Source: Dendrobates tinctorius | Taxonomy: Eukaryota | Direction: 5' to 3' | Length of the DNA: 64,000 bases | Assembly (NCBI RefSeq): GCF_039654945.1 | Contig: NW_027361869.1 | Coordinates: 8,184,001-8,248,000, forward strand | Part shown: piece by piece, positions 1-57,763 of the stretch | Layout of the letters: each line of letters begins with the position of its first letter | How positions within the stretch are numbered: the stretch's first letter is position 1 | Position numbers and translations under genes: made by a program | Notes under the pieces: generated by a model | The model's database searches: none | Told to the model about the DNA's origin: nothing | What the model saw: only the letters and a program-made list of their open reading frames with translations

Positions 1-180
1 TGGATGATATAGTAACTGACCCAAGCTAGCAGGAGGACATGCAAAGTGAGGACAGCAGCATAGGGGGAGGGAGGCATAGCGCCCCAACAGCCAGGAAGAA
101 GCAGTGTGGTTGCCGCAGACAGAAGGCCGGCGACTATTAACAGTAACACCAACATGATGGAAGTTGCCTGTCCATCTGTT

Positions 181-320
181 AGGCCTTCTCAAGTCTAGTT
201 GTTTTTTAATACTCTGCCCATAACCCCAAAAAAGGTCATTTGCACCACCTGCCATGCCAGCATCAGCAGGGGTAGCAAAACTACCAGCCTCACCACCACG
301 AGCATGATCAGGACCATGGT
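181..320 (+). pseudogene. Degenerate BED zinc-finger fragment of a hAT-type transposase
   Basis: Reads RPSQV*LFFN...VICTTCHASISRGSKTTSLTTTSMIR, matching the BED pattern vW.fF...C..C...isrG...TtsM.rH; the W codon is TAG and the His region is disrupted. Repeated at 57516-57655. Confidence 0.6.
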
Positions 321-381
321 TGGTAGCAAAGCCGGCAGTATTAAAGGTCAGGAATTCGCTCTTCTTGAGGGAGGATTGGGT

Positions 382-397
382 GGCTCTGAAAAGAGCC
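382..397 (-). terminator. H3 3' stem-loop with downstream purine-rich HDE
   Basis: Minus strand AAA-GGCTCTTTTCAGAGCC-ACCCA...AAGAAGAGC. Confidence 0.97.
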
Positions 398-428
398 TTT
401 GTGTTGCAGTCAGGTGGGCAGGACAGAT

Positions 429-1000
<572 letters not shown>

Positions 1001-1310
1001 CACTGTACAGAGAAGGCTCAACCTGACTCACAGTTCAGCTATCACCCACTGCTCTGATACACAGGGTCACATCCAATCTCCAGGCGGCTTCTACAGCGGA
1101 AGCTCCGATTCTATATTCCCAGTACCCAGAGCGGTACAGCAGCTCCTCTATAATCAGTCACTGACGCTCCAACTCTCACATCGGAGTTATAACCTCACAC
1201 CACTCTTACTAAGATGTGGGTTACAGGTGGTGATAATTAGGATGATGGAAGTAACGTGATTTCTGCTGCACATCGGCCCCTTCCCTCCATTACACAGAAC
1301 TGTCACCTGA

Positions 1311-1815
1311 AGGCACCGATCATACAGCTCTGCGGGGAGGAGGTGGAGGCACTGATCATACAGCTCTGCGGGGACAGGGTGGTGGCACTGATCATACAGC
1401 TCTGCGGGGAGGAGGTGGAGGCACTGATCATACAGCTCTGCGGGGACAGGGTGGTGGCACTGATCATACAGCTCTGCGGGGAGGAGGTGGAGGCACTGAT
1501 CATACAGCTCTGCGGGGAGGAGGTGGAGGCACTGATCATACAGCTCTGCGGGGACAGGGTGGTGGCACTGATCATACAGCTCTACGAGGACAGGGTGGTG
1601 GCTCAGATCATACAGCTCTGCGGGGACAGGGTGGTGGCACCGATCATACAGCTCTGCGGGGACAGGGTGGTGGCACTGATCATACAGCTCTACGAGGACA
1701 GGGTGGTGGCACCGATCATACAGCTCTGCGGGGACAGGGTGGTGGCACTGATCATACAGCTCTACGAGGACAGGGTGGTGGCACCGATCATACAGCTCTG
1801 CGGGGACAGGGTGGT
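1311..1815 (-). repeat. Homogeneous 36-bp minisatellite (~14 copies) of the H1 cleavage-site/HDE segment
   Basis: Minus-strand unit GCCACCACCCTGTCCCCGCAGAGCTGTATGATCAGT, continuous and in register with the H1 stem-loop. Confidence 0.97.
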
Positions 1816-1831
1816 GGCTCTGAAAAGAGCC
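1816..1831 (-). terminator. H1 3' stem-loop; first HDE at 1791-1800
   Basis: Minus strand AAA-GGCTCTTTTCAGAGCC-ACCACCCTGTCCCCG-CAGAGCTGTA. Confidence 0.97.
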
Positions 1832-1858
1832 TTTGTGTAAAATAACTGGGTCCGCAAC

Positions 1859-2476
1859 TTATTTCTTGGCCGCGGGCTTCTTGGCTTTCTTAGCCGGACT
1901 CTTGGCAGCTTTAGGTTTGGCCGCCTTTTTAGCCGGACTCTTCGTCGCCTTCTTAGGCTTGGGAGCGGCTTTCGACTTCTTGGGGCTCTTGGCCGCTTTC
2001 TTGGCAGCTGCGGGCTTCTTGGCCTTTTTCGGGCTCTTCTTGGCCGTGGTCAGAGCCTTCTTGGGCTTCTTCGGAGATTTGGCGGCTTTCTTAGCAGCAA
2101 CGGGTTTCTTGGGCTTGGCTGCTGACTTCTTGGCCACTTTAGTCTCCTGCTTCTTGTTGAGTTTGAAGGACCCGGAGGCGCCGCTGCCCTTCACCTGGAG
2201 GAGGGTGCCCTTGGTGACCAGAGACCTGACGGCCAGCTTCAGGCGGCTGTTGTTCTTCTCTACATCGTACCCTCCGGCAGACAGCGCCTTCTTCAGGGCG
2301 GCCAGAGACACCCCACTGCGCTCCTTAGAGGCTGACACGGCTTTCACGATCAGCTCGGAGACGCCAGGACCGGAGGATTTCTTGCTGCTCTTGGCGGCGG
2401 ATTTCTTTGGCTGCTTCTTGGACTTGGCAGCCGGTTCTGCGGGAGGGGGAGCGGCGGCTGGCGCGGTCTCTGCCAT
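1859..2476 (-). CDS. H1: Linker histone H1 (somatic, replication-dependent)
   Basis: 205 aa [10 protein letters not shown]..., globular domain [15 protein letters not shown]...[14 protein letters not shown]-rich tail with SPKK motifs. Confidence 0.98.
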
Positions 2477-2547
2477 CCTGTGCTACGGAGCCAAAACACA
2501 AAAATCTCCCGATAGGAAAACACTAAGGCCGGAGCTGGAGGAGTCTG

Positions 2548-2638
2548 TTATATGTACAGGCTTACTGTGCACTGATTGGCTGCTGAGCTACACCGTCCTG
2601 AGCATCTATTGGCTGACACTGCATACATGCCCCGCCTC
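2548..2638 (-). promoter_or_regulatory. H1 promoter
   Basis: TATAA (2548-2552), CCAAT (2575-2579, 2608-2612), GC box (2631-2636) upstream of the minus-strand ATG. Confidence 0.7.
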
Positions 2639-5600
2639 TTCCCAGCTGAGAACGAGTGAAGCTCCGCTCTCCCCTTGTGCTTCCCTGCCCGGAATAAAAG
2701 CCCTTTACCGGCTGACACCGGACAGCAGAGCGCGCTTCCTCCGCCGCTTCTTCTTCGCCATCTTCTCCACCGACCGTCTGTAGCTGTCACTAGCAGAGAC
2801 GCCGGGGAAGAGCGGAGAGGAGGTCCCGGGATCATCGCCGTCGTCCTCCAGATCTGCACATCGCTGTGTATCCGGGAAGATACATCTGCTGGGGGAACTC
2901 GTTCCTCCTGTTCCCGGCTCCTGTCACCATCACAGGGATCTTTACTACAATGTCTATCGTACAGGACGCTGATTGTACGATGTGGGGACGACCTGGAGCT
3001 GCTGAGAGCCCAGAAGGGTAACACAGGCGATGGCTCCGCTGACTGCCGCCTCCCTGACCTGTGACCTCCCTGTACCCCGTATGTGCGGAGTATTGGGGGT
3101 GACAGATGCTCCACATCAGGAGATGATCCACATCGGCGGCTGATTGCAATGACCTGCTAAAATCTGGTCTCACCCATTGTGGAGCTGTGACCGCTGAGGC
3201 CTGTAATGGTGGAAGAGAACTGATAAGGGGCAGCTTCATAATGCGACTCACTCCCCAACCAGACGCATCTCCGGGGAGAAAACTGTGAGATATTCCTGGA
3301 TTTATGTGACCCAACTATTGTGCAAAAGGGGAATATTGGGAGAAAAGAGGAGACACAAAATGCAATTTCTACACACAGAGCACAGCTGTATAGGGATGAG
3401 GTGGTGGCACTGATCATAAAGCTCTGCAGGGATGATGTGGTGGCACTGATGATACAGGTGTGCAGGGACGAGGTGGTGGCACTGATCATACAGCTCTGCA
3501 GGGACGAGGTGGTGGCACTGATCATACAGCTCTGCAGGGATGAGGTTGTGGCACTGATCATACAGCTCTGCAGGGATGAGGTTGTGGCACTGATCATACA
3601 GCTCTGCGGCGACAAGGTGGTGGTACTGATCATACAGCTCTGCAGAGAGGAGGTGGTGGCACTGATCATACAGCTCTGAAGGGAATGTGTGGTGGCACTG
3701 ATCATAAAGTTCTGCAGTGACGAGTTGGTAGCACTAATCATACTGCTTTTCAGGGAGGAGGTGGTGGCACTGATCATACAGCTCTGCAGGAATGAGGAGG
3801 TGGCACTGATCATACAGCTCTGCGGGGACAAGGTGGTGACACTGATAATACACCTCTGCGGCGACAAGGTGGTGGCACTGATCATACAGCTCTGCGGGGA
3901 CAAGGTGTTGGTACTGATCATACAGCTCTGCAAGGACCAGGTGGTGGCACTTATCATACAGCTCTGCAGAGAGGAGGTGGTGGCACTGATCATACACCTC
4001 TGCGGCGACAAGGTGTTGGTACTGATCATACAGCTCTGCAAGGACCAGGTGGTGGCACTTATCATACAGCTCTGCAGAGAGGAGGTGGTGGCACTGATCA
4101 TGCAGCTCTGCTCGGACAATGTGGTGGCACTTATGTTACAGCTTTGCGGGGACAAGGTGGTGGCAGTGATAATACAGCTCTACAAGGATGAGGTGGTGGT
4201 GCTAATCATACAGCTCTGCAGGGAGGAGGTGGTGGCACTGATCATACAGCTCTACGGGGACAAGATGGTGGCACTGATCATAAAGCTCTGAGGGGATGAC
4301 GTGGTGGCACTGATCAAATAGCTCTGCAGGGATTCGGTGGTGGCACTGATCGTACAGCTCTGCAAGGAGTTGGCGGTGGCACTGATCATACAACTTTGCG
4401 GCGACAAGGTGGTGGCACTGATCATACAGGTCTGCAGGTAAAAGGTGGTGGCACTGAACATACAGCTCAGCGCGGACAAGATGGTAGCACTGATCAGACA
4501 GCTCTACATGGAGGAGGTTGTGGCACTGAACATACTGGTTTGCAGGGATGAGGTAGTGGCACTGATCATACAGCTGTGCCTGGATGAGGTGGTTGCACTG
4601 ATCATACAGCTCTGCAGGGAAAAGTTGGTGACACTGATCATACACCTCTGCAGCAACAAGGTGGTGGTACTGATCATACAGCTCTGCGGGGACAAGATGG
4701 TGGCACTGATCATAAAGCTCTGCAGGGATGATGTGGTGGCACTGATCATACAGGTCTGCAGGGATGAGGTGGTAGCACTCATCATACATCTCTGCAGGGA
4801 CGAGGTGGTGGCACTGGTCAAATAGCTCTGCAGGGATTAGGTGGTGGCACTGATCTTACAGCTCTGCAAGGAGTAGGCAGTGGCACTGATCATACAGCTC
4901 TGCGGGGACTAGGTGGTGGTACTGATCATACAGCTCTGTGCTGACCAACTGATGGCACTGATCATACAGCTTTGCGGTGACAATGTGGTGGCACTGATTA
5001 TACAGTTCTGCGGCGACAACGTGGTAGTACTGATCATACAGCTCTGCATGGAAAGGTGGTGGCACTCCACAAGCAGCTCTGCAGGGAAACGGTGGTGGCA
5101 CTGAACATACAGCTCAGCGCGGACAAGGTGGTGGCACTGATCAGACAGCTCTACAGGGAGGAGGTGTTGGCACTGTACATACTTGCTTGCAGGGATGAGG
5201 TAGTGGCACTGATCATACACCTCTGCAGGGATGAGGTGATGGCACTGAAGATACAGCTCTGCAGGGATGAGGTGGTTGCACTGATCATAAGGCTCTGCAG
5301 GTACAAGGTTGTGTCACTGATCTTAAAGCTCTGCAGGGATGAGGTGGTGGCACTGATCATACAGTTCTGCGGGGATCAGGTGGTGGCACTGATCATACAG
5401 CTCTGTGTGGATAAGATGGTGGCAATGATAATACAGCTCTGCAGGGAGGAGTTGGTGGCACTGATCATACAGCTCTGCAAGGATGAGGTGTTGGAACTGA
5501 TCATACAGCTTTGCGGGGACAATGTGGTTGCACTGATTATAAATCTCTTTAGGGATAAGTTGGAGGCACTGATCATGCGGTTCTGCAAGGATGAGGTTGT

Positions 5601-7275: not shown

Positions 7276-7527
7276 GATGATATTGGAGACTGCGGACAGA
7301 CAGTCACTGGCGTTCTGTATTACAGAGGGGTAAGGTCAGGGGAAGACGTATACAGTTGTGTGTCATCAGCATAAAGATGGTACCGAAAGCCAAATTTGCT
7401 GATGGTCTGTCCAATTGGGGCTGTATAGAGAGAGAAGAGATGGGGGCCAAGGACTGAGCCCTGAGGTACCCAGACAGCAAGAGGAAGAGGAAATGAAGTG
7501 GAGCCAGAGAACAAAACACTGAAGAAC
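7276..7527 (-). mobile_element. L2-clade LINE RT fragment, copy 1 of 4
   Basis: Translates [40 protein letters not shown]; similar to but distinct from the RT at 38858-39361. Confidence 0.9.
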
Positions 7528-7670
7528 TCTGCAGGGACGAGGTGGTGGCACCGATCATACAGGTCAGCAGGGACGAGGTGGTGGCACTCATTATAGAACT
7601 CTGCAGGGATGAAGTGGTGGCACTGATCATACAGCTCTGCGGGGGAGGAGGAGGTGGCACTGATCATACA

Positions 7671-7868
7671 GGCCAAAAATGGGGGACGGGGTATAGCATG
7701 CAGATGGAGAGCACATTGATGCTGGAAAGAGCCTTTGTGTGGCAGTCAGGTGAGCAGGACAGATCTAAGCTCTCTCCCCACGGATCCAGCGGGCTAGCTG
7801 GATATCTTTGGGCATGATGGTGACCCTCTTAGCGTGGATCGCGCACAGATTTGTGTCCTCAAACAGCC
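7671..7868 (-). pseudogene. Collapsed-cluster relic 1: array-edge flank fused to H3 3' fragment
   Basis: 7671-7727 matches 50186-50249; 7726-7868 matches H3 ~390-532 ([33 protein letters not shown] plus half stem-loop). Confidence 0.93.
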
Positions 7869-10800
7869 AAGATGGTGAACTGATCATACAGCTCTGTAGT
7901 GACGAGGTGGTGGCACTGATCATGCAGTTCTGCAGGGATGAGGTTGTGGCACTGATCATACAGCTCGGCAGGGATGAGGTAGTGGCACAAATCATACAGC
8001 TCTGCAGGGAGGAGAGGAGGTAGTGGCACAGATCATACAGCCCTGCAGGGATGAGGTGGTGGCACTGATCATACACCTCTGCGGCGACAAGGTGGTGGCA
8101 CGGATCCTACAGCTCTGCGAGGACCAGGTGGTGGCACTGATCGTAAAGCTCTGCAGAGGTGGTGGTGGCACTGATTAGACAGCTTTGCAGGGAGTAGGTG
8201 GTGGCACTGATCATACAGCTCTGCGGGGACAAAGTGGTGGCACTTATGTTACAGCTTTGCGGGGAAAAGGTTGTGGCACTGATCATACAGCTCTGCAGGG
8301 AGGAGTTGGTGGCACTGATCATACAGCTCTGTGCTGACCAACTGGTGGCACTGATCATGCAACTTTGCGGTGACAAGGTGATGGCACTGATTATACAGTT
8401 CTGCGGTGACAAGGTGCTGGCACTGTTCATACAGGTCTGAAGGGAAAAGGAGGTGACACTGAACATACAGCTCAGCGCGGACAAGGTGGTGGCACTGATT
8501 ATACAGTTCTGCGGTGACAAGGTGGTGGCACTGATCAAACAGCTCTGCAGGGATTAGGTGGTGGCACTGATTATACAGCTCTGTGCTGACCAACTGGTGG
8601 CACTGATCATGCAACTTTGCGGTGACAAGGTGATGGCACTGATTATACAGTTCTGCGGTGACAAGGTGGTGGCACTGATCATACAGGTCTGCAGGGAAAA
8701 GGTGGTGGCACTGAACATACAGCTCAGCACGGACAAGGTGGTGGCACTGATCAGACAGCTCTACAGGGAGGAGGTTTTGGCACTGAACATCCTGGTTTGC
8801 AGGGATAAGGTAGTGGCTCTGATCATACAGCTCTGCAGGTATGAGGTGGTGGCACTGAAGATTCAGCTCTGCAGGGATGAGGTGGTTGCAATGATCATAC
8901 AGCTCTGTGGGGACAAGGTTGTGTCACTGATCTTACAGATCGGCAGGGAGTATGTGGTGGCATTGATCATTCAGCTCTGTGTGGATAAGATGGTGGCACT
9001 GATAATGCAGCTCTGCAGGGAAGAGGTGGTGACACTGATCATACAGCTCTGCAAGGACGAGGTGTTGGCACTGATCATACAGCTTTGCGGGGACAATGTG
9101 GTTGCACTGATTATACATCTCTTTAGGGATAAGTTGGAGGCACTGATCATGCAGTTATGCAGGGATGAGGTTGTGGCACTGATCATACAGCTCTGCAAGG
9201 ACGAGGTGTTGGCACTGATCATACAGCTTTGCGGGGACAATGTGGTTGCACTGATTATACTTCTCTTTAGGGATAAGTTGGAGGCACTGATCATGCAGTT
9301 ATGCAGGGATGAGGTTGTGGCACTGATCATACAGCTCTGCAGGTATGAGTTAGTGGCACTGATCATACAGCTCTGAAGGGATGAGGTAGTGGCACAGATC
9401 ACACAGCTCTGCAGGGATGAGGATGTGGCACTGATCATACAGCTCTGCGGGGACAAGGTGGTGACACTGATAATATACCTCTGCGGCGACAAGGTGGTGG
9501 TACTGATCATACAGCTCTGCAGAGAGGAGGTGGTGGCACTGATCATACAGCTCTGAAGGGAATAGGTGGTGGCACTGATCATAAAGTTCTGCAGTGACGA
9601 GTTGGTGGCACTAATCATACTGCTTTGCAGGGAGGAGGTGGTGGCACTGATCATACAGCTTTGCGTGGACAAGGTGGTGGCACTGATCATATAGCTCTGA
9701 GGGGATGACGTGGTGGACTGATCAAATAGCTCTGCAGGGATTAGGTGGTGGCAATGATCATACAGCTCTGCAAGGAGTAGGCGGTGGCACTGATCTTACA
9801 GCTCTGTGCTGACCAACTGGTGGCACTGATCATACAACTTTGTGGTGACAAGGTGGTGGCACTGATTATACAGTTCTGCGGCTACAAGGTGGTGGCACTG
9901 ATCATACAGCTCTGAAGTGACGAGGTTGTGGCAATGATCATGCAGTTCTGCAGGGATGATTCAGTAGCACAGATCATACAGCCCTGCAGGGATGAAAGGG
10001 TGGCACTGATCATAGAGCTCTGCAGGGAAAAGTTGGTGACACTGATCATACACCTTTGTGGCGACAAGGTGATGGTACTGATCATACAGCTCTGCAAGGA
10101 CCAGGTGGTGGCACTGATCATAAAGCTCTGCAGGGATGAGGTGGTGGCACTGATCATACAGCTCTGCAGAGAGGAGGTGGCGGCACTGATCATACACCTC
10201 TGCGGGGACAAGGTGGTGACACTGATTATACACGTCTGTGGCGACGAGGTGCTGGTACTGATCATACAGCTCTGCAGGGAGGAGGTGGTGGCACTGATCA
10301 TACACCTCTGCAGCAACAAGGTGGTGGTACTGATCATACAGCTCTGCGGGGACAAGATGGTGGCACTGATCATAAAGCTCTGCAGGGATGATGTGCTGGC
10401 ACTGATCATACAGGTCTGCAGGGATGAGATAGTGGCTCAGATCATACAGCTCTACAGGGATGAGGAGGTGGCACTGATCATACACCTCTGCGGGGACAAG
10501 GTGGTGACACTGATTATACACGTCTGTGGCGACAAGGTGCTGGTACTGATCATACAGCTCTGCAGGGAGGAGGTGGTGGCACTGATCATACAGCTCTGAA
10601 GGGAATAGGTGGTGGCACTGATCATAAAGTTCTGCAGTGACGAGGTGGTGGCACTAATCATACTGCTTTGCAGGGAAGAGGTGGTGGCACAGATCATACA
10701 GCTCTGCAGAGAGGAGGTGGTGGCACTGATTATACAGCTTTGCAGGGAGGAGATGGTGGCACTGATCATACAGCTCTGCAGGGAGTAGGTGGTGGCACTG

Positions 10801-19798: not shown

Positions 19799-20050
19799 GA
19801 TGATATTGGAGACTGCGGACAGACTGTCACTGGCGTTCTGTATTACAGAGGGGTAAGGTCGGGGGAAGACGTATACAGTTGTGTGTCATCAGCATAAAGA
19901 TGCTACCGAAAGCCAAATTTGCTGATGGTCTGTCCAATTGGGGCTGTATAGAGCAAGAAGAGATGGGGGCCAAGGACTGAGCCCTGAGGTACCCAGAAAG
20001 CAAGAGGAAGAGGAGATGAAGTGGAGCCAGCGAACAAAACACTGAAGAAC
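19799..20050 (-). mobile_element. L2 RT fragment, copy 2
   Basis: Same boundaries and sequence as 7276-7527. Confidence 0.9.
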
Positions 20051-20192
20051 TCTGCAGAGACGAGGTGGTGGCACCGATCATACAGGTCAGCAGGGACGAG
20101 GTGGTGGCACTCATTATAGAGCTCTGCAGGGATGAAGTGGTGGCACTGATCATACAGCTCTGCGGGGAGGAGGAGGTGGCACTGATCATACA

Positions 20193-20406
<214 letters not shown>

Positions 20407-23912: not shown

Positions 23913-24164
23913 GATGATATTGGAGACTGCGGGCAGACAGTCACTGGCGTTCTGTATTACAGAGGGGTAAGGTCGGGGGAAGACGTATACAGTTGTGTGT
24001 CATCAGCATAAAGATGGTACCGAAAGCCAAATTTGCTGATGGTCTGTCCAATTGGGGCTGTATAGAGAGGGAAGAGATGGGGGCCAAGGACTGAGCCCTG
24101 AGGTACCCAGACAGCAAGAGGAAGAGGAGATGAAGTGGAGCCAGCGAACAAAACACTGAAGAAC
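23913..24164 (-). mobile_element. L2 RT fragment, copy 3
   Basis: Same boundaries; YADD motif retained. Confidence 0.9.
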
Positions 24165-24270
24165 TCTGCAGGGACGAGGTGGTGGCACCGATCATACAGG
24201 TCAGCAGGGACGAGGTGGTGGCACTCATTATAGAGCTCTGACGGGATGAAGTGGTGGCACTGATCATACA

Positions 24271-24484
<214 letters not shown>

Positions 24485-29882: not shown

Positions 29883-30134
29883 GATGATATTGGAGACTGC
29901 GGACAGACTGTCACTGGCGTTCTGTATTACAGAGGGGTAAGGTCGGGGGAAGACGTATACAGTTGTGTGTCATCAGCATAAAGATGGTACCGAAAGCCAA
30001 ATTTGCTGATGGTCTGTCCAATTGGGGATGTATAGAGCAAGAAGAGATGGGGGCCAAGGACTGAGCCCTGAGGTACCCAGAAAGCAAGAGGAAGAGGAGA
30101 TGAAGTGGAGCCAGCGAACAAAACACTGAAGAAC
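29883..30134 (-). mobile_element. L2 RT fragment, copy 4
   Basis: Same boundaries; YADD motif retained. Confidence 0.9.
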
Positions 30135-30276
30135 TCTGCAGAGACGAGGTGGTGGCACCGATCATACAGGTCAGCAGGGACGAGGTGGTGGCACTCATTA
30201 TAGAGCTCTGCAGGGATGAAGTGGTGGCACTGATCATACAGCTCTGCGGGGAGGAGGAGGTGGCACTGATCATACA

Positions 30277-30490
<214 letters not shown>

Positions 30491-30814
30491 TCATACAGCT
30501 CTGCATTGACGAGGTGGTGGAACTGTTCATGCAGTTCTGCAGGGATGAGGTTGTGGCACTGATCATACAGCTCTGCAGGGAGGAGAGGAGGTAGTGGCAC
30601 AGATCATACAGCCCTGCAGTGACGAGGTGGTGGCACTGATCATACAGTTCTGCAGGGACAAGGTGGTGACACTGATCATACACCTCTGCAGCGACAAGGT
30701 GGTGGTACTTATCATACAGCTCTGCGAGGACCAGGTGGTGGCACTGATCATAAAGCTCTGCAGAGAGGAGGTGGTGGCACTGATTAGACAGCTTTGCAGG
30801 GAGGAGATGTTGGC

Positions 30815-33800
30815 TGTTGTGAGTTCATTTTCCCCTTCACTACTGAGGCCCGATGAACTCCCTCTTCTGGTAAAGAAAGGTAGTGAGCCTGATTATCAAA
30901 CACCTGAGCCTAATGATGATGACTGGCTGAGTGGAGTTACTGACTGGATATAAGGCCGCCGACGCCCTTCTGCCCTGCGGGTGATTTCTCTGTGGGATCC
31001 TTGGAGACCAGTCTGAATTCCTGCTCTTCTAAAGCTAAGTTTTCTGCTCGGCTTTTTGCATTTGTGCTTTGACTTTGTTTTGCTTTGTTTTTCCGGATTT
31101 CTGCCATTCCCTGCTGGGGTGAGCTGAATTCCTTTAGCTCTGTCCTCTGAAAATACCTTAGTGCTGATTTAGTTTTTGAAGCCTAGCTGCTTCAGGGTCT
31201 TTTTCCATATCAGCTTGTTGGCTTATGTCTTTGATATGGTTTTGGCAGATTGCAGACAGCAACCTTTCTTTCCTGTTCTGTTTAGTTAGCTTGAGCCCCA
31301 TTGTTTGCTCAGCCTATCTTTCTATCTGTGTGAGTGTTTTTTCATCTTGCGTCACCGTCATTATATGTTGGGGGCTGCCTTTTACTTTGGGGTCTGCTCT
31401 GGGGCAGTTTAGATTTCCTTTTCTGTCTTTAGGCTATTTAGCTCTCCGGCTGTGATTGAGGGGTCTAGGGCACCGTAGGAACCCCCCACGGCTACTGCTA
31501 GTTGTGTTGATAGGTTCAGGGGTCTGCAGTCTGATAGTTGCCAACTTCTCTGGTTTTCTGGACGTAGCTTCTATTTTTGTGTCTGCCTCCTACGGTGACT
31601 CAATCATAACAGAATCACCTGCCATACCGCAGATCCTAGGGTACTCAATAGCAGGAAAGAATTGTAAAAAAAAAAAAAAAAAAGTGTGTATATTTTTTCC
31701 TCTATATCTCTGAGGCCGTAGGGGGATTTTTTTTTTTTCTCTCAATGGAGATAAAGCAATTGTCTGATCGTGTGGAGCAGCTCGCTGCGGAAGTGCGTGG
31801 AATTTCCGCCTACCTTGCTCATTCACATGCTGCTGAACCAAAGATTCCTACACCTGATGTATTTTTTGGGGATCGGTCTAAATTTTTGAATTTCAAAAAT
31901 AATTGTAAATTATTTTTTGCCTTGAAGCCTAACTCGTCAGGGAGCTCCGCGCAGCAGGTTAAAATTGTCATCTCTTTGCTGCGTGGCGATCCCCAGGATT
32001 GGGCGTTTTCTTTGAAACCAGATGATCCTTTTCTGACTAATGTGAACGCATTTTTTCAAGCCTTGGGGTTGTTGTATGACAAACCTAATGCCATTGATCA
32101 GGCTGAAAAGACCCTGCTGGCATTGAACCAGGATCGAGATTCTGCAGAATTGTACTGTCAAAAATTCCGAAAATGGGCAGTACTTACTACCTGGAATGAT
32201 AATGTCTTGGCTGCTCTCTTTCGGAAGGGGTTTTCAGAAGCCGTAAAAGATACTATGGTGGGATTTCCTGTTCCCTCTGGTCTTGACGATTCTATGTCAT
32301 TAGCTATTCAGGTTGATCGGCGTTTGCGCGAACGCAAAACTGCACGAGAGGTGTTGCCACCTGTTGAACAAATGTCTGAACCTATGCAATGTGATAGAGT
32401 TTTGTCCAGAGAGCAGCGTCAGGAGTTCAGAAGGCGTAATAAGTTGTGTTTTTTTTTCTGTGGAGATGCCTCGCATGTTATTTCTGTCTGCCCTAAACGA
32501 GAGAAACGCTTTGCACACACGTTTTCTGTTGGTAGTGTTCAACCTAAGTTTCTTCTGGCTATTACTCTGATCTGCTCCCTGTCCACATTTTCCGCCAAGG
32601 CTTTTGTGGATTCGGGAGCAGCCCTAAACCTAATGGACTTGGATTTTGCTAAACGTTGTGGATTTCCGATGACACCTCTGCAGACGCCTATCCCTTTGAG
32701 GGGGATTGATGCTACTCCTTTGGCTAAAAATAAACCTCAGTTTTGGACCCAGGTGGTAATGCGGGTCGCCCCAGACCATCAAGAAAATTGCAGATTTTTG
32801 GTGTTGCATAATCTGCATGATACTATTGTTCTGGGGTTTCCCTGGTTACAAATTCATAATCCAGTTTTGGATTGGAAATCTGTGTCTATGGTGAGTTGGG
32901 GTTGTCGGTGTGCCTTTAGTGAGGCTCCGGTGTTTTCCACCTCTCCTCAGTCGCATGATGTTCCTGATTATTTGGCGGACTTTTATGATGTATTTAGTGA
33001 GAATGAGTCTGCGTCTCTGCCTCCTCATAGGAGTTATGACTGTGCAATTGAACTGAGCCCGGGGTGTAAATTTCCCAAGGGTCGGCTCTTCAATTTATCT
33101 GTACCCGAGCATGAGGCTATGCGATCCTATATTAAGGAGGCGTTGGAGAAGGGTCATATTAGACCATCCTCGTCACCCTTAGGTGCCGGTTTTTTTTTTG
33201 TAGCCAAAAAGGATGGATCATTAAGACCTTGTATTGATTATCGTGCCCTCAACAAAATTACTGTTAAATATCAGTATCCGTTACCCCTGATTTCTGATAT
33301 ATTCTACAGAGTTAAAGGTGCTTGCTGGTTTACCAAGCTTGACCTCGGGGGGCGTATAATCTTATTCGCATTAAGCATGGGGATGAATGGAAGACGGCGT
33401 TTAATACTCCGGAGGGACATTTTGAGTACCTGGTGATGCCTTTTGGGCTCACTAATGCCCCTTCTGTCTTCCAGTGCTTCATGAACGATATTTTCCGAGA
33501 TTTTGTCGATAAATTTTTGATTATCTATCTGGATGATATTTTGATCTTCTCCAAGGACTGGGATTCTCATGTGGAACATATTCGGACTGTGTTCCGTATC
33601 TTGAGGGAGAATTCCCTGTATGTCAAAGGATCTAAATGCCTTTTTGGAGTACAGAGGATTTCTTTTTTGGGATTTATTTTGTCCCCGTCAACTATTGAAA
33701 TGGACCCGGCCAAGGTACAGGCCATTTACGATTGGGTTCAGCCCACTTCTTTGAAGGCCCTCCAGAAGTTTTTGGGTTTTGCTAATTTTTATCGGAAATT

Positions 33801-36598
33801 TATAGCAAAATTTTCTAGTATTGCCAAGCCATTGACTGATTTGACTAAGAAGGGTGCTGATGTGTTAAATTGGTCTCCGGAGGCTGTTTCTTCCTTTCAG
33901 GAGCTGAAGCGAAGATTCACCTCCGCCCCGGTTTTGCGGCAACCTGATGTCTCACTTCCGTTCCAGGTAGAGGTGGATGCTTCTGAGATTGGTGCAGGAG
34001 CTGTTTTGTCCCAAAAGGATCCTGTAACATCTAAAATTAATCCCTGTGCTTTCTTTTCCCGAAAGTTCTCTCCATCTGAACGTAACTATGATGTGGGGAA
34101 TCGGGAACTGTTGGCCATGAAAGGGGCATTTGAGGAGTGGAGACATTGGTTGGAGGGAGCTAAGCATCAAGTCGTGGTCCTCACTGACCACAAGAATTTG
34201 ATTTACCTAGAGTCGGCTAAGCGCTTGAGCCCTAGACAGGCTAGGTGGGCTTTGTTTTTTTACACGTTTTGATTTTGTGGTTTCTTTTCTTCCTGGAACT
34301 AAGAATGTCAAGGCAGACGCCCTCTCTAGGAGCTTCTTTGCTGATTCTCCTGTGGTGACCAAGCCTGCTACCATCTTAGGCGAAGGGGTAGTTCTTTCTG
34401 CCATCTTGCCCGATTTGAGACGTGCTCTGGAAGAGTTCCAGGAGGACAAACCTGAGCGTTGTCCCAGTGGAAAGTTGTATGTTCCTGATCAGTGGAAGAA
34501 GAGAGTGATGTCTGAAGTTCATTGCTGTGCTTTGGCTGGTCATCCAGGTATTTTTTTTACTAGACATCTGGTGAGTCGATCTTTTTGGTGGCCCTCCTTG
34601 TCTCGTGATGTCAGGAATTTTGTGCAGTCCTGTGGGACGTGCTCCCGGTCTAAATCGTGTTCTCGCTCTAGTGGGTTGTTGATGCCTTTGCCTGTCCCCA
34701 AGAGGCCATGGACCCATATTTCAATGGATTTCATCTCTCATATGCCTGTCTCTCAAAGGATGACTGTTATTTGGGTGATTTGTGATAGGTTCTCTAAGAT
34801 GGTTCATCTTGTACCACTCCCTAAGTTGCCGTCTTCCTCTGAGTTGGTGCCCCTGTTTTTGCAACAGGTGGTTCGCTTGCAAGGGATTCCTGAGAACATT
34901 GTATCTGACAGAGGAGTTCAGTTTGTGTCTAGATTTTGGAGAACTTTCTGTTCCAAGCTGGGAATTCAGTTGTCCTTCTCCACTGCTTTTCACCATCAGA
35001 CCAATGGGCAGACAGAGAGAACAAACCAGACCTTTGAGTCATATTTGAGATGTTTTATTTCTGCTGATCAGGATGATTGGGTTTCATTTTTGCCCTTGGC
35101 CAAATTTGCTTTAAATAATGGAGCTAGTTCTGCCACTTTGATGTCACCTTTTTTTGTAACTTTGGGTTTCATCCTCGATTTTCTTCAGGGCAGGTGGAGC
35201 CCTCTGCCTGCCCAGGTGTTGACACTGTGGTGGAGAGAATGCACCAGGTCTGGGACCAAGTGGTGGATAAGTTATCTCTCTCCCAGGAAAAGGCCCAGCG
35301 GTTTTCCAACCGACATAGGACCATTGGTCCCCAGTTTAAGGTTGGTGATATGGTGTGGTTATCATCAAAAAATATTGCTATGAAGGTGGCTCCTCCTAAG
35401 TTTAAGCCTAGATTTATTGGACCTTACAAGATTTTGGAGATTATTAATCCGTTCTCTTTTCGTTTGGCTCTTCCTGTCACATTTAAAATCCATAATGTGT
35501 TCCATAAATCTTTGTTGAAGAGGTTTGTTGAACCTGTTGTTCCGGGGGTGGCACCTCCAGACCCTGTATTGGTTGAAGGTAACATGGAATATGAGGTAGA
35601 GAAAGTACTGGATTCCCGTCTGGCTAGACGGAGACTCCAGTATTTGGTTAAGTGGAAGGGTTATGGTCAGGAGGATAATTCCTGGGTCTCTGCCTCTGAT
35701 ATTCATGCCAAAAGATTGGTGCGTGCCTTTCATCGGTCTCACCCGGATCGCCCTGGTGGCATGGATGAGGGTTCGGTGACCCCTCCTCAAGGGGGAGGTA
35801 CTGTTGTGAGTTCATTTTCCCCTTCACTACTGAGGCCCGATGAACTCCCTCTTCTGGTAAAGAAAGGTAGTGAGCCTGATTATCAAGCACCTGAGCCTAA
35901 TGATGATGACTGGCTGAGTGGAGTTACTGACTGGATATAAGGCCGCCGACGCCCTTCTGCCCTGCGGGTGAATTCTCTGTGGGATCCTTGGAGACCAGTC
36001 TGAATTCCTGCTCTTCTAAAGCTAAGTTTTCTGCTCGGCTTTTTGCATTTGTGCTTTAACTTTGTTTTGCTTTGTTTTTCTGGATTTCTGCCATTCCCTG
36101 CTGGGGTGAGCTGAATTCCTTTAGCTCTGTCTTCTGAAAATAACTGAGTGCTGATTTAGTTTTTGAAGCCTAGCTGCTTCAGGGTCTTTTTCCATATCAG
36201 CTTGTTGGCTTATGTCTTTGATAGGGTTTTGGCAGATTGCAGACAGCAACCTTTCTTTCCTGTTCTGTTTAGTTAGCTTGGGCCCCATCGTTTGCTCAGC
36301 CTATATTTCTATCTGTGTGAGTGTTTTTTCATCTTGCTTCAGCGTCATTATATGTTGGGGGCTGCCTTTTACTTTGGGGTCTGCTCTGGGGCAGTTTAGA
36401 TTTCCTTTTCTGTCTTTAGCCTAATTAGCTCTCCGGCTGTGATCGAGGGGTCTAGGGCACCGTAGGAATCCCCCACGGCTACTGCTAGTTGTGTTGATAG
36501 GTTCAGGGGTATTCAATCTGATAGTTGCCAACTTCTCTTTTTTTCTGGACGTAGCTTCTATTTTTGTGTCTGCCTCCTACGGTGACTCAATCATACCA
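30815..36598 (+). mobile_element. Full-length Ty3/Gypsy LTR retrotransposon, Tf1/sushi chromovirus type
   Basis: 797-bp LTRs at 30815-31611 and 35802-36598 (TG...CA), polypurine tract AAGGGGGAGG before the 3' LTR, GTTGGC on both flanks, order gag-PR-RT-RH-IN-chromo. Confidence 0.97.
31745..35940 (+). pseudogene. Frameshifted gag-pol polyprotein
   Basis: Zn knuckle [15 protein letters not shown], protease AFVDSGA, RT YLDD, RNase H VDAS...TDHKNL, integrase SMDF/VSDRG/NGQTERTN, chromodomain YEVEKVLDSR...YLVKWKGY; split over four ORFs. Confidence 0.93.
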
Positions 36599-37857
36599 GT
36601 TGGCACTGATCATACAGCTCTGCAGGGAGTAGGTGGTGGCACTGATCATACAGCTCTGCGGGGACAAAGTGGTGGCACTTATGTTACAGCTTTGCGGGGA
36701 CAAGGTGGTGGCACTGATCATACAGCTCTGCAGGGAGGAGTTGGTGGCACTGAACATACAGCTCAGCGTGGACAAAGTGGTGGCACTGATCTTAAAGCTC
36801 TACAAGGATGAGGTGGTGGTACTAATCATACAGCTCTGCAGGGAGGAGGTGGTGGCACTGATCATACAGCTCTGCGGGGACAAGATGGAGGCACTGATGA
36901 TAAGGCTCTGCAGGGATGATGTGGTGGCACTGATCGTACAGGTCTGCAGGGATGAGGTGGTAGCACTCATCATACAGCTTTGCGTGGACAAGGTGGTGGC
37001 ACTGATCATATAGCTCTGAGGGGATGACGTGGTGGCACTGATCAAATAGCTCTGCAGGGATTAGGTGGTGGCACTGATCATACAGCTCTGCAAGGAGTAG
37101 GCGGTGGCACTGATTCAACAGCTGTGCGAGGAGTAGGCAGTGGTACTGATCATACAGCTCTGTGCTGACCAACTGGTGGCACTGTTCATGCGGTGACAAG
37201 GTGGTAGCACTGATTATACAGTTCTGCGGCGACAAGGTGGGGGCACTGATCATACATGTCTGCAGGGAAAAGGTGGTGGCACTGAACATACAGATCAGCG
37301 CGGACAAGGTGGTGGCACTGATCAGACAGCTCTACAGGGAGGAGGTTGTGGCACTAAACTGGTTTGCAGGGATGAGGTAGTGGCACTGATTATACAGCTC
37401 TGCAGTGAGAGGTGGTGGCACTGAAGATACAGCTGTGCAGGGATGAGGTGGTTGCACTGATCATACAGCTCTGCAGGGAGTAGGCGGTGGCACTGATCAT
37501 ACAGCTCTGCGGGGACTTGGTGGTGGTACTGATCATACAGCTCTGTGCTGACCAACTGGTGGCACTGATCATACAACTTTGTGGTGACAAGGTGGTGGCA
37601 CTGATTATACAGTTCTGCGTCTACAAGGTGGTGGCACTGATCATACAGGTCTGCAGGGATGAGTTGGTGGCACTGATCATGTAGCCCTGAGGGGATGACG
37701 TGGTGGCACTGATCAAATAGCTCTGCAGGGATTAGGTGGTGGCACTGATCTTACAGCTTTGCGGGGACAATGTGATGGCACTGATTATATATCTCTTTAG
37801 GGATAAGTTGGAGGCACTGATCATGCGGTTCTGCAGGGATGAGGTTGTGGCACTGAT

Positions 37858-40800
37858 AATGATAATAATAATAATAATAATACAAAATTTTATTTTTATA
37901 GCGCCGACATATTCCGCAGCACTTTACATTTCAAAGGGGATTTGTACAGACAATAGACATTACAGCATAACAGTAATCACATACAGTAGATTATAACAAA
38001 TACCAAGAGGAAAGAGGGCCCTGCTCGCAAGTTTACAGTCTATGAGGAAAGAGGTAGACACGAAAGGTGGGTGGTAACAGTTGCCCTGATTGTAGGAACC
38101 AGCCATACTGTTAGGTATGTGACAGTACGGACACAGAGGGCTAATGGATGCATAAAACATGTGAGAACATGATGCGGGAAAACTGCTTATGGTAAAACTT
38201 TTGGCTGTGCCACACGGGGATAGATTAGGTTAATGTGTTGAGGCGATAGACCAGTCTGAATAAATGCGTTTTCAGGGCACGCTTAAAATTGTGGGGATTG
38301 GGGACTAATCGTATTGACCTGGGAAGTGCATTCCAAAGAATTGGCGCTGCACGTGTAAAGTCATGGAGACGGGAGTGGGAGGTTCTGACTATTGAGGATG
38401 CTAACCTCAGGTCATCAGCAGAACGGAGGGCGCGGGTAGGGTGGTATACTGAAACAAGGGAGGAGATGTAGGGTGGTGCTGAGCCATGGAAGGCTTTGTG
38501 GGTGAGGGTAAAAGGTTTATACTGAATTCTGGAGTGGATGGGTAGCCAGTGTAATGACTGGCACAAGGTAGAGGCATCGGTGTAACGATTGGTGAGGAAT
38601 ATAATCCTGGCTGCAGCATTCAAGACAGATTGGAGGGGGGAGAGTTTGGTAAGAGGGAGACTGATTAGAAGAGAGTTACAATAGTCGAGAGGAGAATGAA
38701 TAAGGGAAACAGTAAGAGCTTTTGCAGAGTCAAAAGTAAGAAAAGGTCGAATTCTAGAAATGTTTTTGAGGTGCAGATGACAAGAGCGAGCCAGTGATCG
38801 AATGTAGGGGGCAAAGGAAAGCTCGGAATCAAGTATGACCCCAAGACAGCGGGCCTTTTACTGGGGAGTAATAGTGGAACCACACACAGAAATAGCAATG
38901 TTGGGTATAGGTACATTAGTAGAGGGAGGAAACATCAGGAGTTCAGTCTTTGACAGGTTCAGTTTCAGATATAGTGAGGACATGATATTAGACACAGTGT
39001 TTAGACAATCGCCGGTGTTTTCTAGAAAGGCTGGCGTGATGTCAGGAGAAGAAGCGTATAATTGGGTGTCATCAGCATAGAGATGGTACTGGAAACCAAA
39101 TCTACTGATTGTTTGACCAATAGGGGCAGTGTACAAGGAGAAGAGGAGAGGGCCTAGAACCGATCCTTGGGGGACCCCAACAGTAAGGGGAAGGTGAGAG
39201 GAGGAGGAACCGGCAAAAGATACAGTAAAGGAGCAGTCAGAGAGATAGGAGGAGAACCAGGAGAGAACGGTGTCCTTGAGGCCAATGGAACGGAGCATAG
39301 TGAGGAGGAGCTGATGATCCACAGTGTCGAATGCTGCAGAGAGATCCAAGAGAATTAGCATGGAGTAATGACCATTTGATTTAGCTGTTAGCAGATCATT
39401 ATAGACTTTAGTGAGGGCAGTTTCAGTGGAGTGTACAGAACGGAAATCGGATTGGAGAGGGTCGAGAACAGAGTTTTCTGAGAGATAGCGGATAAGACGG
39501 GAGTGGATCAGGCGTTCCAGGAGTTTAGAGATGAAGGGAAGATTAGAGACAGGTCTATAGTTAGCGGCACAGTTTTGGTCGAGGGATGGTGTTTTAAGTA
39601 GTGGATGTTTGATGGCAAACTTAAATGTGGAGGGAAAAATACCTGAAGAGAGAGGTTAAATAGTTTAGTTAGGTGAGGGGTGACAGCAGGGGAAAGGGAC
39701 TGGAGGAGATGTGACGGAAATGGGTCACTGGTGCAAGTAGTTGGGCGAGAAGATGCAAGGAGCCTGCTTACTTCTTCTTCTGTGACTGGTTCAAAATCAG
39801 AGAGTGAGCTAGATGCAGTGGGGGAGGGAGGACAGTGCATGGTATGAGGTGATTGGGAGATAATTTCCTGTCGGATCTGGTCAATTTTTTCTTTGAAGTA
39901 ATTGGCCAGATCGTCAGCTCGGAGCTCCGAGGTTGGGGCCTGTACTCTTGGGTTGAGAAGAGAATGAAAAGTGTCAAAGAGACGTTTCGAGTTATTGGAC
40001 AGTGAGGTGATGAGGGTGTTGAAATAGGTTTGTTTGGAGAGGTGAAGGGCAGTGTTGTATGTTCAAAGCATAAACTTATAATGGATGAAATCTTCGTGTA
40101 GATTGGATTTTCTCCACAGACGTTCGGCGCACCTGGAGCACCGCTGCAGGAAACGTGTTTGGGAAACGTGTTTGCACCGTGTGCCAGGGTTGTCGCCGTC
40201 TGTGTTGTGGTGTTCTAGTTATAAGGGGTGCAAATTCATCCAGGGCACTTTGAAGTGTTTCATTGTAATGCTTCAATGCAGAATCAGGGCATGAGAGGGA
40301 GGAGATAGGGGCCAATGAAGACTGCAAGTTCTTCGTAAGTTTCTGGGTGTTAATGGCCTGTATGTTTCTATAAGTCTGGACAGTGGGGGTGACCTGAGCA
40401 GCCTGGCAGTTCTTGATAGAGAATGAAAGAAGATTGTGGTCAGAGAGCGGGAGAGGGGAGTTTGCAAAATCATCCACTGCACAAAGCCGAGAGAAGACCA
40501 AGTCGAGGGAGTTTCCGACTTCATGCGTTGGAGAATTAGTAAGCTGCGAAAGGCCAAATGAGGAGGTTAGAGATAAAAGGTGAGCAGCAGATGGTGAGAG
40601 GGGAAGAGCAATGGGAATGTTGAAATCTCCCATGATGAGGGTAGGGATGTCACAGGAGAGAAAATGTGGAAGCCAAGTGGCAAAATGATCCAGGAACTGA
40701 TGGGAGGGGCCGGGAGGACGATACACCACCGCCACTCGCATGGAGAAGGGGGTGTAGGGTCTGACGGCATGGACCTCAAAAGAAGGGAAGACAAGTGAGG

Positions 40801-41560
40801 GTACTTGAGGGATAACCTGAAAGGTACATTTTGGTGATAGGAGCAGACCAACGCCTCCACCTGCTCTACTGTCTGATCTTGGGGTATGAGAGAAGTGTAG
40901 CCCCCCGTATGAAAGAGCAGCAGCAGCGGTAGTGTCTGACTGCTGGATCCAGGTTTCAGTAAGAGCCAGAAGGTTAAGAGAATTAGAAAGGAAGAAGTCA
41001 TGGATGAAGGAGAGTTTGTTACAAACTAAGCGAGAATTCCAAAGTGCACAATTAAGAGAGACAGATGGCATGCAGGGAATATTAATAAGATTAGAGGGGT
41101 TTCTAAGTGTAGCAGTTGGGGGGTTTGACTTTCTATAACATGGGGGACCAAGGTTGGGAGCAATGTCTCCTGCGACTAGGAGAAGGAGGATAGAAAGAGT
41201 GAGCAGATTGTTAAGTGATTTGTGAGAGCGTCTCTGATGTTGAATGGTGGGACTGACTGGATCTGTGCAATTTAACAATGTGAAAAGAGCGTGAGTGCTA
41301 TACATAGGAGAGGAAAGGAGCGAGGGGCCGATATGGATGGAGTGTAGAGAGTTAATGCAAGGGCGGTGGATGTGTGTGAATGCAGCGGCCAGGATATAAA
41401 TTATACAAATGCTTATGGTATATATTTGATGTGCTCCAAATGTACAGGGAGTAGATGTATATAAATGTCTTACCTGTCTCCTGCCCTGTCTAACTGCCAT
41501 GCTATAACTGACAGTAGTACTTTGATTCATGTACTTCGATTACATGTGCATAAATGCCAC
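37858..41560 (-). mobile_element. L2-clade LINE (~3.7 kb) with disrupted APE-RT ORF2
   Basis: APE motifs (LTETW, VVYRPP, MGDFN, LDL, SDH) in 40076-41530; [22 protein letters not shown] in 38858-39361; (TAT)n tail at ~37858-37881; CACTGAT duplicated on both sides. Confidence 0.95.
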
Positions 41561-51286: not shown

Positions 51287-52374
<1,088 letters not shown>

Positions 52375-52408: not shown

Positions 52409-52424
52409 GGCTCTTCTAAGAGCC
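52409..52424 (+). terminator. H2B 3' stem-loop; HDE CAGAGCTGT at 52441-52449
   Basis: AAA-GGCTCTTCTAAGAGCC-ACCACCCCATCTCCAT-CAGAGCTGT. Confidence 0.96.
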
Positions 52425-54127
52425 ACCACCCCATCTCCATCAGAGCTGTGGCTGCTCCTGTGTCCTTTCCCGTCTCCCCGAGTTGTCTGCTCCACCGCCT
52501 GGGTCTCTGCGTCTAGTGACGGGAAGTGACAGGTGAAGGAAGTAGGGATGATGAATGCTACCAAGGAGATTGTGAGAACCGAGGACCTTCTAAATAATAA
52601 CCTGGTCACTTCTCCATAAGTTGCTCTGTGTTCAGGGACTACTCTTTAACCCCTTGCTCCACAGATCTTGATATTCTGGGGTCTCATTCATTTGGTATAA
52701 CATGATTCGGTTTAGTTCATGATACACCATGATGACTAATAACACTTTCTAAGCCGGGATGCTTTGAGACTGAATTTTCTCCCCCATGCAGCACCAGACA
52801 GTGAGCTGACGATTTTCCTCTCTGCACTTAGTTCATGATTCTCGTGTTTTTCCTCAAATAACAGGAGACATTTGTAGTCGGTGCAGTTTTATCTAGAGAT
52901 TATGCTGGAGTCTTCACTGTAAAGGGAAGCGGTGACGACATTTTAGAAGCAGCGGGAAATTCAAACCCCCTAACCGTCCTGTGTTCAGCCAATCCGCAGA
53001 GGGAGGGGAGGAGCTAATGTTCCCAATGGTTGACACGTTTGCAGTTCCCGCTTTTTCTGTTCTTTGTCTCCATATAACGCGCGGTCCCAGGACGGAGCGA
53101 TGTCGGGGAATCTGCAGGTGTTGAGAGGTCGCTGGTCGCTTACATCCCATACAGGAGTCTGCAGCTGTTCCTGGTTAGAGAATGAATCCGCGTTAGGCAG
53201 ATGCTGTGATGCCCCGTGTGTCTGACCTGCAGGCGATCACATCTCCCTTTCTCGTCATAATCAGTATTGTGGAGACAATATATTGGCTAGAGATGTATCC
53301 TACAAGAGACATTTCAGGGGAGACCAATTCTGCTCTTCCAAGCAGATCCCACCTGCAGCTCCAGGCAGGAGGTCTGTGATGGGAAATGTGCGATCATGTA
53401 GAGAAGATTGCCGAGAGCTCAGTGCACAATACATTACACTGTGATGTGAGGATCCTCTAGGTCAGACATGTCATGACATCATCTCCCATCACATCCTCCT
53501 CACAGATGTTTTTTAAATAATTACTGCAGGATATGGGGCGATATTGGCGGCTGGGATCAGTCAGGATCACTGCTGAGCTCTGATTTTCAGCCTTTTCTGT
53601 CATTATGTTAATAATTGTTTTTCCTAATTAATTGTAGCTGACAGCAGGTCCCTACTCTGCAGCAATGTGAGCTATGATGTGGTGGAAAAAAGAATCATTG
53701 CCAGGGGAAGAAGAAAACACAAATATAAGGACAATAGTGTCATAATTGCCCGAAGTAATGATGACTCCTATCATAGCACAAATGTCCCTAATGCGGGAAT
53801 ATAAGACCTGAATAAAGGCAGAGAGGGCTTAGCCCTGGGGTTAATATAAATGTAATATTCTCTATGAAAACCGGAGATCCTGTGATTACTGAGGACTGAG
53901 CCTTATATCAGGCAGTGTATCTACCGGTGTGAGATCCCCTGGGCGGCTGCCTGTAATATCTGTGGTTACAGTCTGTTCTGTCCTCCTGACATATACTGGG
54001 GCCGTGTCTGCTCCCCTCTATTTGTGCTGCCCATTTATCTATAGGCTGAATCTGGAATAATTCTCATCACAGGGGAAGAAGTGACATTATATTACAAGCT
54101 GGAAAGAAAAGGGAAACTGAACAATGA

Positions 54128-54290: not shown

Positions 54291-54629
<339 letters not shown>

Positions 54630-57515: not shown

Positions 57516-57655
57516 AGGCCTTCTCAAGTCTAGTTGTTTTTTAATACTCTGCCCATAACCCCAAAAAAGGTCATTTGCACCACCTGCCATGCCAGCATCA
57601 GCAGGGGTAGCAAAACTACCAGCCTCACCACCACGAGCATGATCAGGACCATGGT
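57516..57655 (+). pseudogene. BED zinc-finger hAT transposase fragment (second copy)
   Basis: Matches 181-320; the relic probably extends upstream to ~57000. Confidence 0.6.
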
Positions 57656-57732: not shown

Positions 57733-57763
57733 TTTGTGTTGCAGTCAGGTGGGCAGGACAGAT

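Follow-up and report, generated by a model that had tools for sequence, protein, structure and literature searches.

A 36-bp satellite of a dendrobatid histone gene locus and its probable origin from the H1 3' processing signal

Background

Several satellite families are known to originate from functional pieces of genes, among them PcP190 of frogs, which is derived from 5S rDNA, and satellites derived from tRNA and snRNA genes. In the newt, Gall, Diaz and co-workers reportedly described, in 1981, histone gene clusters, the satellite tracts between them and the read-through of these tracts on lampbrush chromosomes. The unit of the newt satellite, which we take to be about 220 bp long, has, to our knowledge, no reported relation to the histone 3' signal. 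PMC5615363 refers to the long satellite tracts between the histone clusters of Notophthalmus and to their read-through on the lampbrush loops. Amphibian oocyte histone locus bodies, which are located at the histone loci, contain U7 snRNP (PMC12046345).

The canonical metazoan histone 3' signal, which is present once per gene, consists of a stem-loop (RF00032), the ACCCA cleavage context and the U7-binding HDE. As printed, the 5' end of human and mouse U7 begins ...GUGUUACAGCUCUUUUAG (PMC7026596). In mouse extracts, no cleavage is observed without a stem-loop when U7 pairing amounts to about 10 bp, and SLBP-independent cleavage requires approximately 15-16 bp of such pairing (PMC7026596). HDE-like motifs that are repressed by U7 snRNA have also been described in human LTR12/HERV1 repeats and in lincRNAs; the LTR12-type motif (15 nt, AAGAGCTGTAACACT, with at most 2 mismatches) is dispersed and experimentally U7-dependent (PMC11417402).

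Here we analyze a 64-kb stretch of DNA from Dendrobates tinctorius (hereinafter, the window), in which a tandem repeat adjoins the 3' end of an H1 gene. As in the newt, the histone gene groups of this frog are located amid tens of kb of one satellite that is placed for read-through but, unlike the newt satellite, the frog unit is 36 bp long and is itself the processing signal. Compared with the canonical signal, the first unit of the repeat possesses every sequence part, whereas the later units retain ACCA and the HDE at the same spacing but lack the 5' stem arm; moreover, they form tandem series of hundreds to thousands, where the canonical signal occurs once in each gene. The monomers resemble the LTR12 motifs in being numerous, repeat-borne complements of the U7 5' end that lie outside normal histone 3' ends. 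They differ from these motifs in that they are tandem, appear to come from a real histone site, offer 9 contiguous pairs and are known from sequence alone; furthermore, the monomer sequence CAGAGCTGTATGATC fails to match the LTR12-type motif (5 mismatches of 15 compared to the 2 allowed). As in PcP190-type satellites, a short gene-associated segment seems to have been amplified in tandem and then subjected to unequal exchange, the difference being that the source in the frog would be an RNA 3'-processing signal rather than an RNA-coding segment. A search of the full-text literature detected no report of this repeat, nor of any satellite that originated from a histone processing signal; the single match to the monomer sequence in full text was an abalone primer, which was discarded.

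Results and discussion

Histone genes, stem-loops and mobile elements in the window

The window contains parts of two histone gene groups, with H3 and H1 genes at the left end and the rest at the right end. The left part includes an H3 gene (429-839, minus strand) and a replication-type H1 gene encoding a 205 aa protein (1859-2476, minus strand), the likely source gene of the array described below, which was identified by its ORF and by protein matches. The best protein matches of this H1 are dendrobatid H1s (91-94% identity over 46-55% of the query), the closest ones coming from Ranitomeya variabilis (94%) and Phyllobates terribilis (91%); the exact H1 protein was absent from the cluster collection searched, and the ESM Atlas yielded no assignment beyond 'Chordata'. 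The right part includes genes for H2A (51287-51691, minus strand), H2B (about 51997-52374, plus strand) and H4 (54318-54629, plus strand), followed by the H3 gene (57764-58174, minus strand) and the H1 gene (59084-59701, minus strand) of the second unit. The middle of the H2B gene is masked by a run of 136 Ns at 52096-52231, within the coding region. The second H1 copy differs from the first by a 2-bp deletion near 59177 (equivalent to 1951-1952), which shifts the frame and replaces the C-terminal tail, such that the product is 181 aa long and ends in GDEESG instead of the 205 aa of the first; this copy is either a pseudogene or an assembly error.

The Rfam histone stem-loop model scores at or above the gathering threshold at both H1 genes, both H3 genes and H4. 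A pattern search for the full stem-loop, allowing up to 3 mismatches, identified seven in the window, one per gene, and none outside these gene-associated sites.

The region 3392-50186 is, in effect, one satellite array that stretches from the upstream region of H1 to the downstream region of H2A and is broken by an LTR retrotransposon, LINE pieces and a relic of an H3 3' end. The retrotransposon is of the Ty3/gypsy type (31745-35940, plus strand), with gag-protease-RT-integrase ORFs in several broken frames, and LINE ORFs for reverse transcriptase and endonuclease are inserted in the satellite at 38225-41530 and at 62593-63687 (both minus strand). One LINE fragment is repeated as short copies at about 7320-7676, 19827-20256, 23941-24334 and 29911-30340, spread by block duplications. 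The H3 relic (7700-7880, minus strand) lies in the bulk satellite with monomers on either side and consists of the last 35 or so codons, the 3' UTR and a truncated stem-loop (AAAGGCTCTTTCCAG...); it suggests that the array has swallowed, or lost by deletion, whole gene units.

The H1 3' end and the adjacent array

The first-pass annotation of this locus, which was made from the sequence alone, stated that the H1 stem-loop runs straight into a 36-bp repeat. TRF, the minus-strand sequence and Rfam agree with this description, in that the stem-loop at 1831-1816 passes unbroken into the 36-bp array at 1823-1312, and the array therefore starts inside the loop and the 3' arm of the stem-loop. On the minus strand, the H1 3' end reads ACACAAAGGCTCTTTTCAGAGCC-ACCACCCTGTCCCCG-CAGAGCTGTATGATCGGTGCC-ACCACC... 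The stem-loop itself, GGCTCTTTTCAGAGCC (1816-1831, minus strand), is the sole complete hairpin of the array and is recognized both by RF00032 (Histone3; 35.9 bits, with a gathering score of 34, at 1790-1836, minus strand) and by RNA folding, which yields a 6-bp stem and a 4-nt loop. In the fold of a 146-nt H1 3' RNA, it is the only significant hairpin (z = -1.2 for the whole fold). The core of the first monomer (1791-1815, minus strand) follows, with the ACCA cleavage context, a spacer and the HDE, including AGAGCTGTA at 1799-1791 (minus strand). Judging from this anatomy, the first monomer, next to the intact stem-loop, is presumed to be the working H1 processing signal.

TRF delineates the H1-adjacent array at 1312-1823 (minus strand; 14.2 copies of 36 bp, score 821, 90% matches, no indels), with the subtypes ACCACCCTGTCCCCG, TCCACCTCCTCCCCG and ...CCTCGTAGAGC. 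Each unit holds, as previously noted, ACCACC and then CAGAGCTGTA 15 nt after the start of ACCA; GCC is followed by ACCACC in the first unit as well as in the majority of monomers, and positions 1-6 are conserved at 81-94%. The octamer that had been assigned to every unit as the loop end and 3' stem arm is indeed present in the form TC(A/G)GTGCC, but near H1 it varies between TCAGTGCC, TCGGTGCC and, once, TCTGAGCC, and the octamer TCAGAGCC is found only in the true stem, never in the other H1-adjacent units. The complete 16-nt hairpin is confined to the first unit; the later monomers keep just TCAGTGCC, without the 5' arm of the stem, and therefore units 2 to n cannot bind SLBP.

The second H1 gene has the same arrangement, i.e., a stem-loop (59058-59043) and an array of 11.2 copies (58646-59058, minus strand), as detected by TRF, Rfam and pattern search. 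In the two H1-adjacent arrays taken together, positions 17-30 are invariant in 25 of the 25 monomers, and all 7 subtype-defining differences are located elsewhere, which has a probability of about 0.03 if the differences are randomly placed. This pattern is a hint of constraint near H1, from a sample that is small because the two arrays are copies of each other.

Similarity to other histone 3' ends and complementarity to U7

The single-copy 3' signal of H2B (52409-52449, plus strand), which consists of the stem-loop, ACCACCCCATCTCCAT and then CAGAGCTGT, serves as an internal outgroup for the monomer. Its layout had been reported to match that of the satellite unit, and the quoted order, GGCTCTTCTAAGAGCC-ACCACCCCATCTCCAT-CAGAGCTGT, was recovered in full, with GCC-ACCACCCCATCTCCAT-CAGAGCTGT at 52422-52449. 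The monomer, rotated to a TCAG start, was then compared with the 3' ends of the window's four other histone genes using 5000 shuffles, and ordered alignments were obtained in each case (z = 7.1 for H2B, 6.3 for H4, 5.3 for H3 and 5.1 for H2A); for the bulk consensus, p does not exceed 0.0006 for any of the four. The distance from the stem to the start of the HDE is 17 nt in H1 and 18-20 nt in H2B, H2A, H3 and H4, and an AGAGC(T) core is common to all five HDEs in the window, which suggests that the 5' end of the U7 of this frog is conserved.

The proposed pairing of the repeat with U7 is upheld for the mammalian molecules: UACAGCUCU is present in human and mouse U7 as printed (PMC7026596, PMC11417402), and AGAGCTGTA is its perfect 9-nt complement, with contiguous Watson-Crick pairs (PMC7026596). 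With human/mouse U7, the H1 unit and the bulk consensus have the same RNAduplex energy, -14.0 kcal/mol, a value that is matched or beaten by 0.2-0.4% of the shuffles; the corresponding values for the single-copy HDEs are -18.2 (H2B), -14.9 (H2A), -10.6 (H3) and -9.9 kcal/mol (H4).

These comparisons bear on two other accounts of the origin of the repeat. A match of 9 nt can arise by chance and satellites are frequent in amphibian histone-cluster spacers, such that an unrelated 36-bp satellite carrying AGAGCTGTA might simply have been inserted beside H1; however, the ordered and correctly spaced alignment with four independent histone 3' ends indicates that the repeat is not an unrelated satellite of this kind, and the start of the array exactly within the H1 stem-loop, as well as a U7 duplex stronger than those of 99.6-99.8% of the shuffles, point in the same direction. 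We consider such an insertion highly improbable, and coincidental resemblance was rejected on the strength of the four alignments. The satellite could also have come from another histone 3' flank, e.g., an H2B-like one, and been grafted onto H1 later, by recombination or gene conversion in the common CAG(A/T)GCCACCACC stretch, in which case the H1 HDE would be a replacement. H2B likewise contains ACCACC ... CAGAGCTGT and matches the monomer in 26 of the 36 aligned positions, but the monomer scores 28-34 against the H1 flank compared to 15 against H2B, a comparison that is partly circular given that the H1 flank is the first monomer. Near-identical histone stem-loops could mediate such an exchange, and the bulk arrays lie on the upstream side of H1, rather than on its downstream side, and downstream of H2A; nevertheless, the array is continuous with H1 only, in both units of the window and in the contig from a related species described below, and no repeats were found in the 3' flanks of H2B, H2A, H3 and H4 in the window. 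A graft from elsewhere thus appears unlikely. The proposal of the first-pass annotation that the satellite was born by tandem amplification of a functional histone processing site is supported by the continuity with H1 and by the ordered alignments, and the derivation from a histone 3' processing signal, most simply that of H1 itself, is well supported. The qualifier "functional" applies to the source site only, the amplified copies being without sign of use.

Extent, turnover and decay of the satellite

The repeat had been located at 1311-1831 and an array is indeed present there, but the family spreads far beyond this segment. A consensus scan that allowed up to 12 mismatches detected 970 non-overlapping monomers, which account for 34.9 kb, or 55% of the 64-kb window; all 970 read in the sense direction of H1, H3 and H2A, and 919 of the 969 spacings between neighbors are exactly 36 bp. 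Among the additional blocks, the bulk satellite upstream of H1 (3392-30814, minus strand; 624 monomers) has the sense consensus ACCACCTCGTCCCTGCAGAGCTGTATGATCAGTGCC, encompasses TRF arrays at 3392-29883, 30134-30277 and 30479-30814, and contains the LINE and H3 relics. A segment at 36601-37857 (minus strand; TRF, 32 monomers) is located between the LTR retrotransposon and a LINE insertion, and the bulk segment at 41561-50186 (minus strand; 240 copies by TRF, 231 monomers) is located some 1 kb beyond the 3' end of H2A and has the HDE-sense orientation. Apart from the second H1-adjacent array (58646-59050 in the scan), the remaining blocks, at 60617-62516 and 63734-64000, belong to the bulk satellite of the second unit (60617-64000, minus strand; TRF, 58 monomers), with the LINE at 62593-63687 inside. 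The family thus displays the features of a satellite, namely long head-to-tail arrays, high copy number, turnover by unequal exchange, and decay.

The flanks of the two units, 1-3400 and 57336-60625, are 99.8% identical over about 2.9 kb, with 5 substitutions and a single 2-bp deletion, whereas the H1-adjacent arrays are three whole monomers (the second array being the shorter) and about 10 substitutions apart within about 0.5 kb; the arrays therefore turn over faster than their surroundings. The second H1-adjacent array shows a 108-bp higher-order period (TRF), and block duplications in the bulk array, with offsets of 6.0, 6.7, 8.1, 9.7 and 10.1 kb, have carried the LINE relics along.

The most decayed sites of the monomer are the CpG at positions 8-9 (C in 50% and G in 41%, with TG and CA variants common) and position 14, the CpG decay being as expected for methylated repeat DNA. 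The nonamer AGAGCTGTA is intact in 38% of the 945 bulk monomers, compared to 41-55% for the 9-mers within positions 21-32, of which TCAGTGCCA is the best kept (54.5%). In the monomer profile, per-base conservation is 83-96% at positions 17-25 and 84-98% at positions 26-36. By both measures, 9-mer and per-base conservation, selection on the U7 site is not apparent in the bulk monomers.

The satellite yields ORFs of 100-400 codons on both strands and in many places within 3157-50186, because the 36-bp unit corresponds to 12 codons and is stop-free in several frames. Such ORFs may be miscalled as proteins and mislead gene prediction; the 13.6-kb H1 gene model in Ranitomeya variabilis may be an artefact of this kind. 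Motif-based searches for histone 3' ends will likewise be confounded by the repeat.

Potential activity and transcription of the amplified copies

The representation of the satellite in sequencing runs was assessed from the depth of unstranded Logan contigs over the region 1735-3390, which includes about 2.5 monomers; such contigs, which carry no transcript ends, indicate presence rather than transcription. Run X15 looks like an RNA library: at the 5' end of H1, the depth collapses from about 24,000 to 38, and the H1 coding depth is approximately 100-500 times that of the spacer. In the same run, the depth of the monomers is 36,000-48,000 versus about 130 for the unique spacer, i.e., a ratio of about 275-370; given that the window contains about 485 monomers per spacer copy, this ratio implies no per-copy enrichment of the satellite over the spacer and can be accounted for by carried-over DNA or by transcription at a uniformly low level. 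Runs labelled 'RNA?' also contain satellite words whose summed depth is high, which would be compatible with transcription.

A different interpretation of the arrays is that they are a used U7 snRNP platform, in which HDE-sense read-through from H1 or H2A would be bound by U7 snRNP and would provide fail-safe cleavage/termination sites, a local reservoir or sponge of U7, or a scaffold for the histone locus body. All 390 exact 9-nt complements of U7 are on the strand of read-through from H1, H3 and H2A, with none on the plus strand, and the H1-adjacent arrays show no variation in the HDE region. Among the 945 bulk copies, by contrast, the HDE core has eroded at least as quickly as the remainder of the monomer. 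The predicted duplex energy of -14.0 kcal/mol falls within the range of the genuine HDEs of the cluster (-9.9 to -18.2 kcal/mol), and in each monomer the spacing between ACCA and the HDE downstream is normal; yet pairing of 9 bp without a stem-loop is a combination that is not cleaved in mammalian extracts, and these in vitro data suggest that cleavage at the amplified copies is unlikely (PMC7026596). U7 can act on repeat-borne HDE-like motifs in human cells (PMC11417402); in amphibian oocytes, U7 snRNP is a component of the 'spheres' at the histone loci, and lampbrush chromosomes show read-through transcription of satellites (PMC12046345, PMC5615363). Against a comparable role here, the satellite lacks per-copy enrichment over the unique spacer in the runs, and the structure of the arrays is that of an ordinary unequal-exchange satellite with transposon insertions. 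We therefore regard a used platform as unlikely. Quite doubtful, too, is the more specific idea that HDE-sense satellite RNA, produced by read-through from H2A or H1 in oocyte lampbrush chromosomes or in S phase, concentrates U7 snRNP at the histone locus; if true, the RNA would serve the histone locus body as a scaffold or reservoir, or would form a zone of fail-safe cleavage and termination between genes, and a cis-acting processing signal would have turned into an architectural repeat. The amplified copies are probably neutral satellite DNA.

Related species and a scenario for the origin of the satellite

A 576-nt contig from a related species (organism A, run X1, record 3) extends from the H1 coding region across the stem-loop and into the first unit, as far as the equivalent of position 1774; because this contig spans the junction, the H1/repeat junction is common to both species. 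In gene tables, the spacing between H1 and the next histone gene is about 1.04-1.06 kb in Phyllobates and R. variabilis compared to 1.02 kb here, a similarity that lends weak support to the presence of a similar array in these frogs. Summed over the monomers, at 1735-1846 in runs X1 and X9, contig depth relative to the spacer is about 870-fold in organism A (X1), about 300-fold in the window's species and about 10-fold in organism B (X9), although contig depth is a poor measure of amplification and diverged monomers may drop below the 82% likeness threshold. These values suggest that amplification differs between relatives and is perhaps lineage-specific within the group. Another Logan contig, L001, on which an H1 gene has a single-copy, unrelated 3' flank, was set aside given that its H1 is only distantly related. 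Scans of metagenomes with monomer patterns returned either nothing or three single, chance-like matches on contigs of 11-14 kb.

The monomers themselves retain some indication of polarity. The H1-adjacent monomers and the H2B flank have in common a C at position 7, where 96% of all monomers have T, which fits the H1-adjacent type being nearer to the ancestor. The monomer octamer TCAGTGCC matches TCAGAGCC of the true stem in 7 of 8 positions; it could be a copy of the stem arm or, equally possibly, a microhomology that already existed downstream and primed the initial duplication.

The best explanation, to which we assign a probability of about 75%, is a satellite derived from the H1 flank, with seed arrays, bulk expansion and neutral copies. 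Under this scenario, a 36-nt piece of the H1 3' flank, comprising the loop end, the 3' arm and the ACCA cleavage context and ending shortly after the U7-binding HDE, would have been tandemly duplicated, founding the satellite family. The ancestral single-copy H1 flank would read ACCACCCTGTCC..CAGAGCTGTATGATC and, if H1 is the source, the single-copy H1 flank of a satellite-free outgroup would read ACCACCCTGTCCCCGCAGAGCTGTATGATC. The short seed array behind each H1 gene would change its number of units by unequal exchange, and an early variant, with C to T changes at positions 7 and 14, would have expanded to arrays of tens of kb that fill the spacers between the histone gene groups. The bulk arrays would enlarge further via multi-kb block duplication and accept transposon insertions. 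The U7-complementary 9-mers in the copies would be an inherited by-product only, and the copies are most likely neutral, methylated repeat DNA and inefficient U7 substrates.

Conclusions

The origin of a satellite is seldom traceable to a known functional element. At this locus, the seed copy has remained joined to its gene and illustrates clearly how a tandem family originates and expands. The result is also a natural experiment, in which the histone genes of a frog lineage are found amid thousands of potential U7 snRNA sites. If these sites are transcribed, the availability of U7, termination between the histone genes or the assembly of the histone locus body could change.
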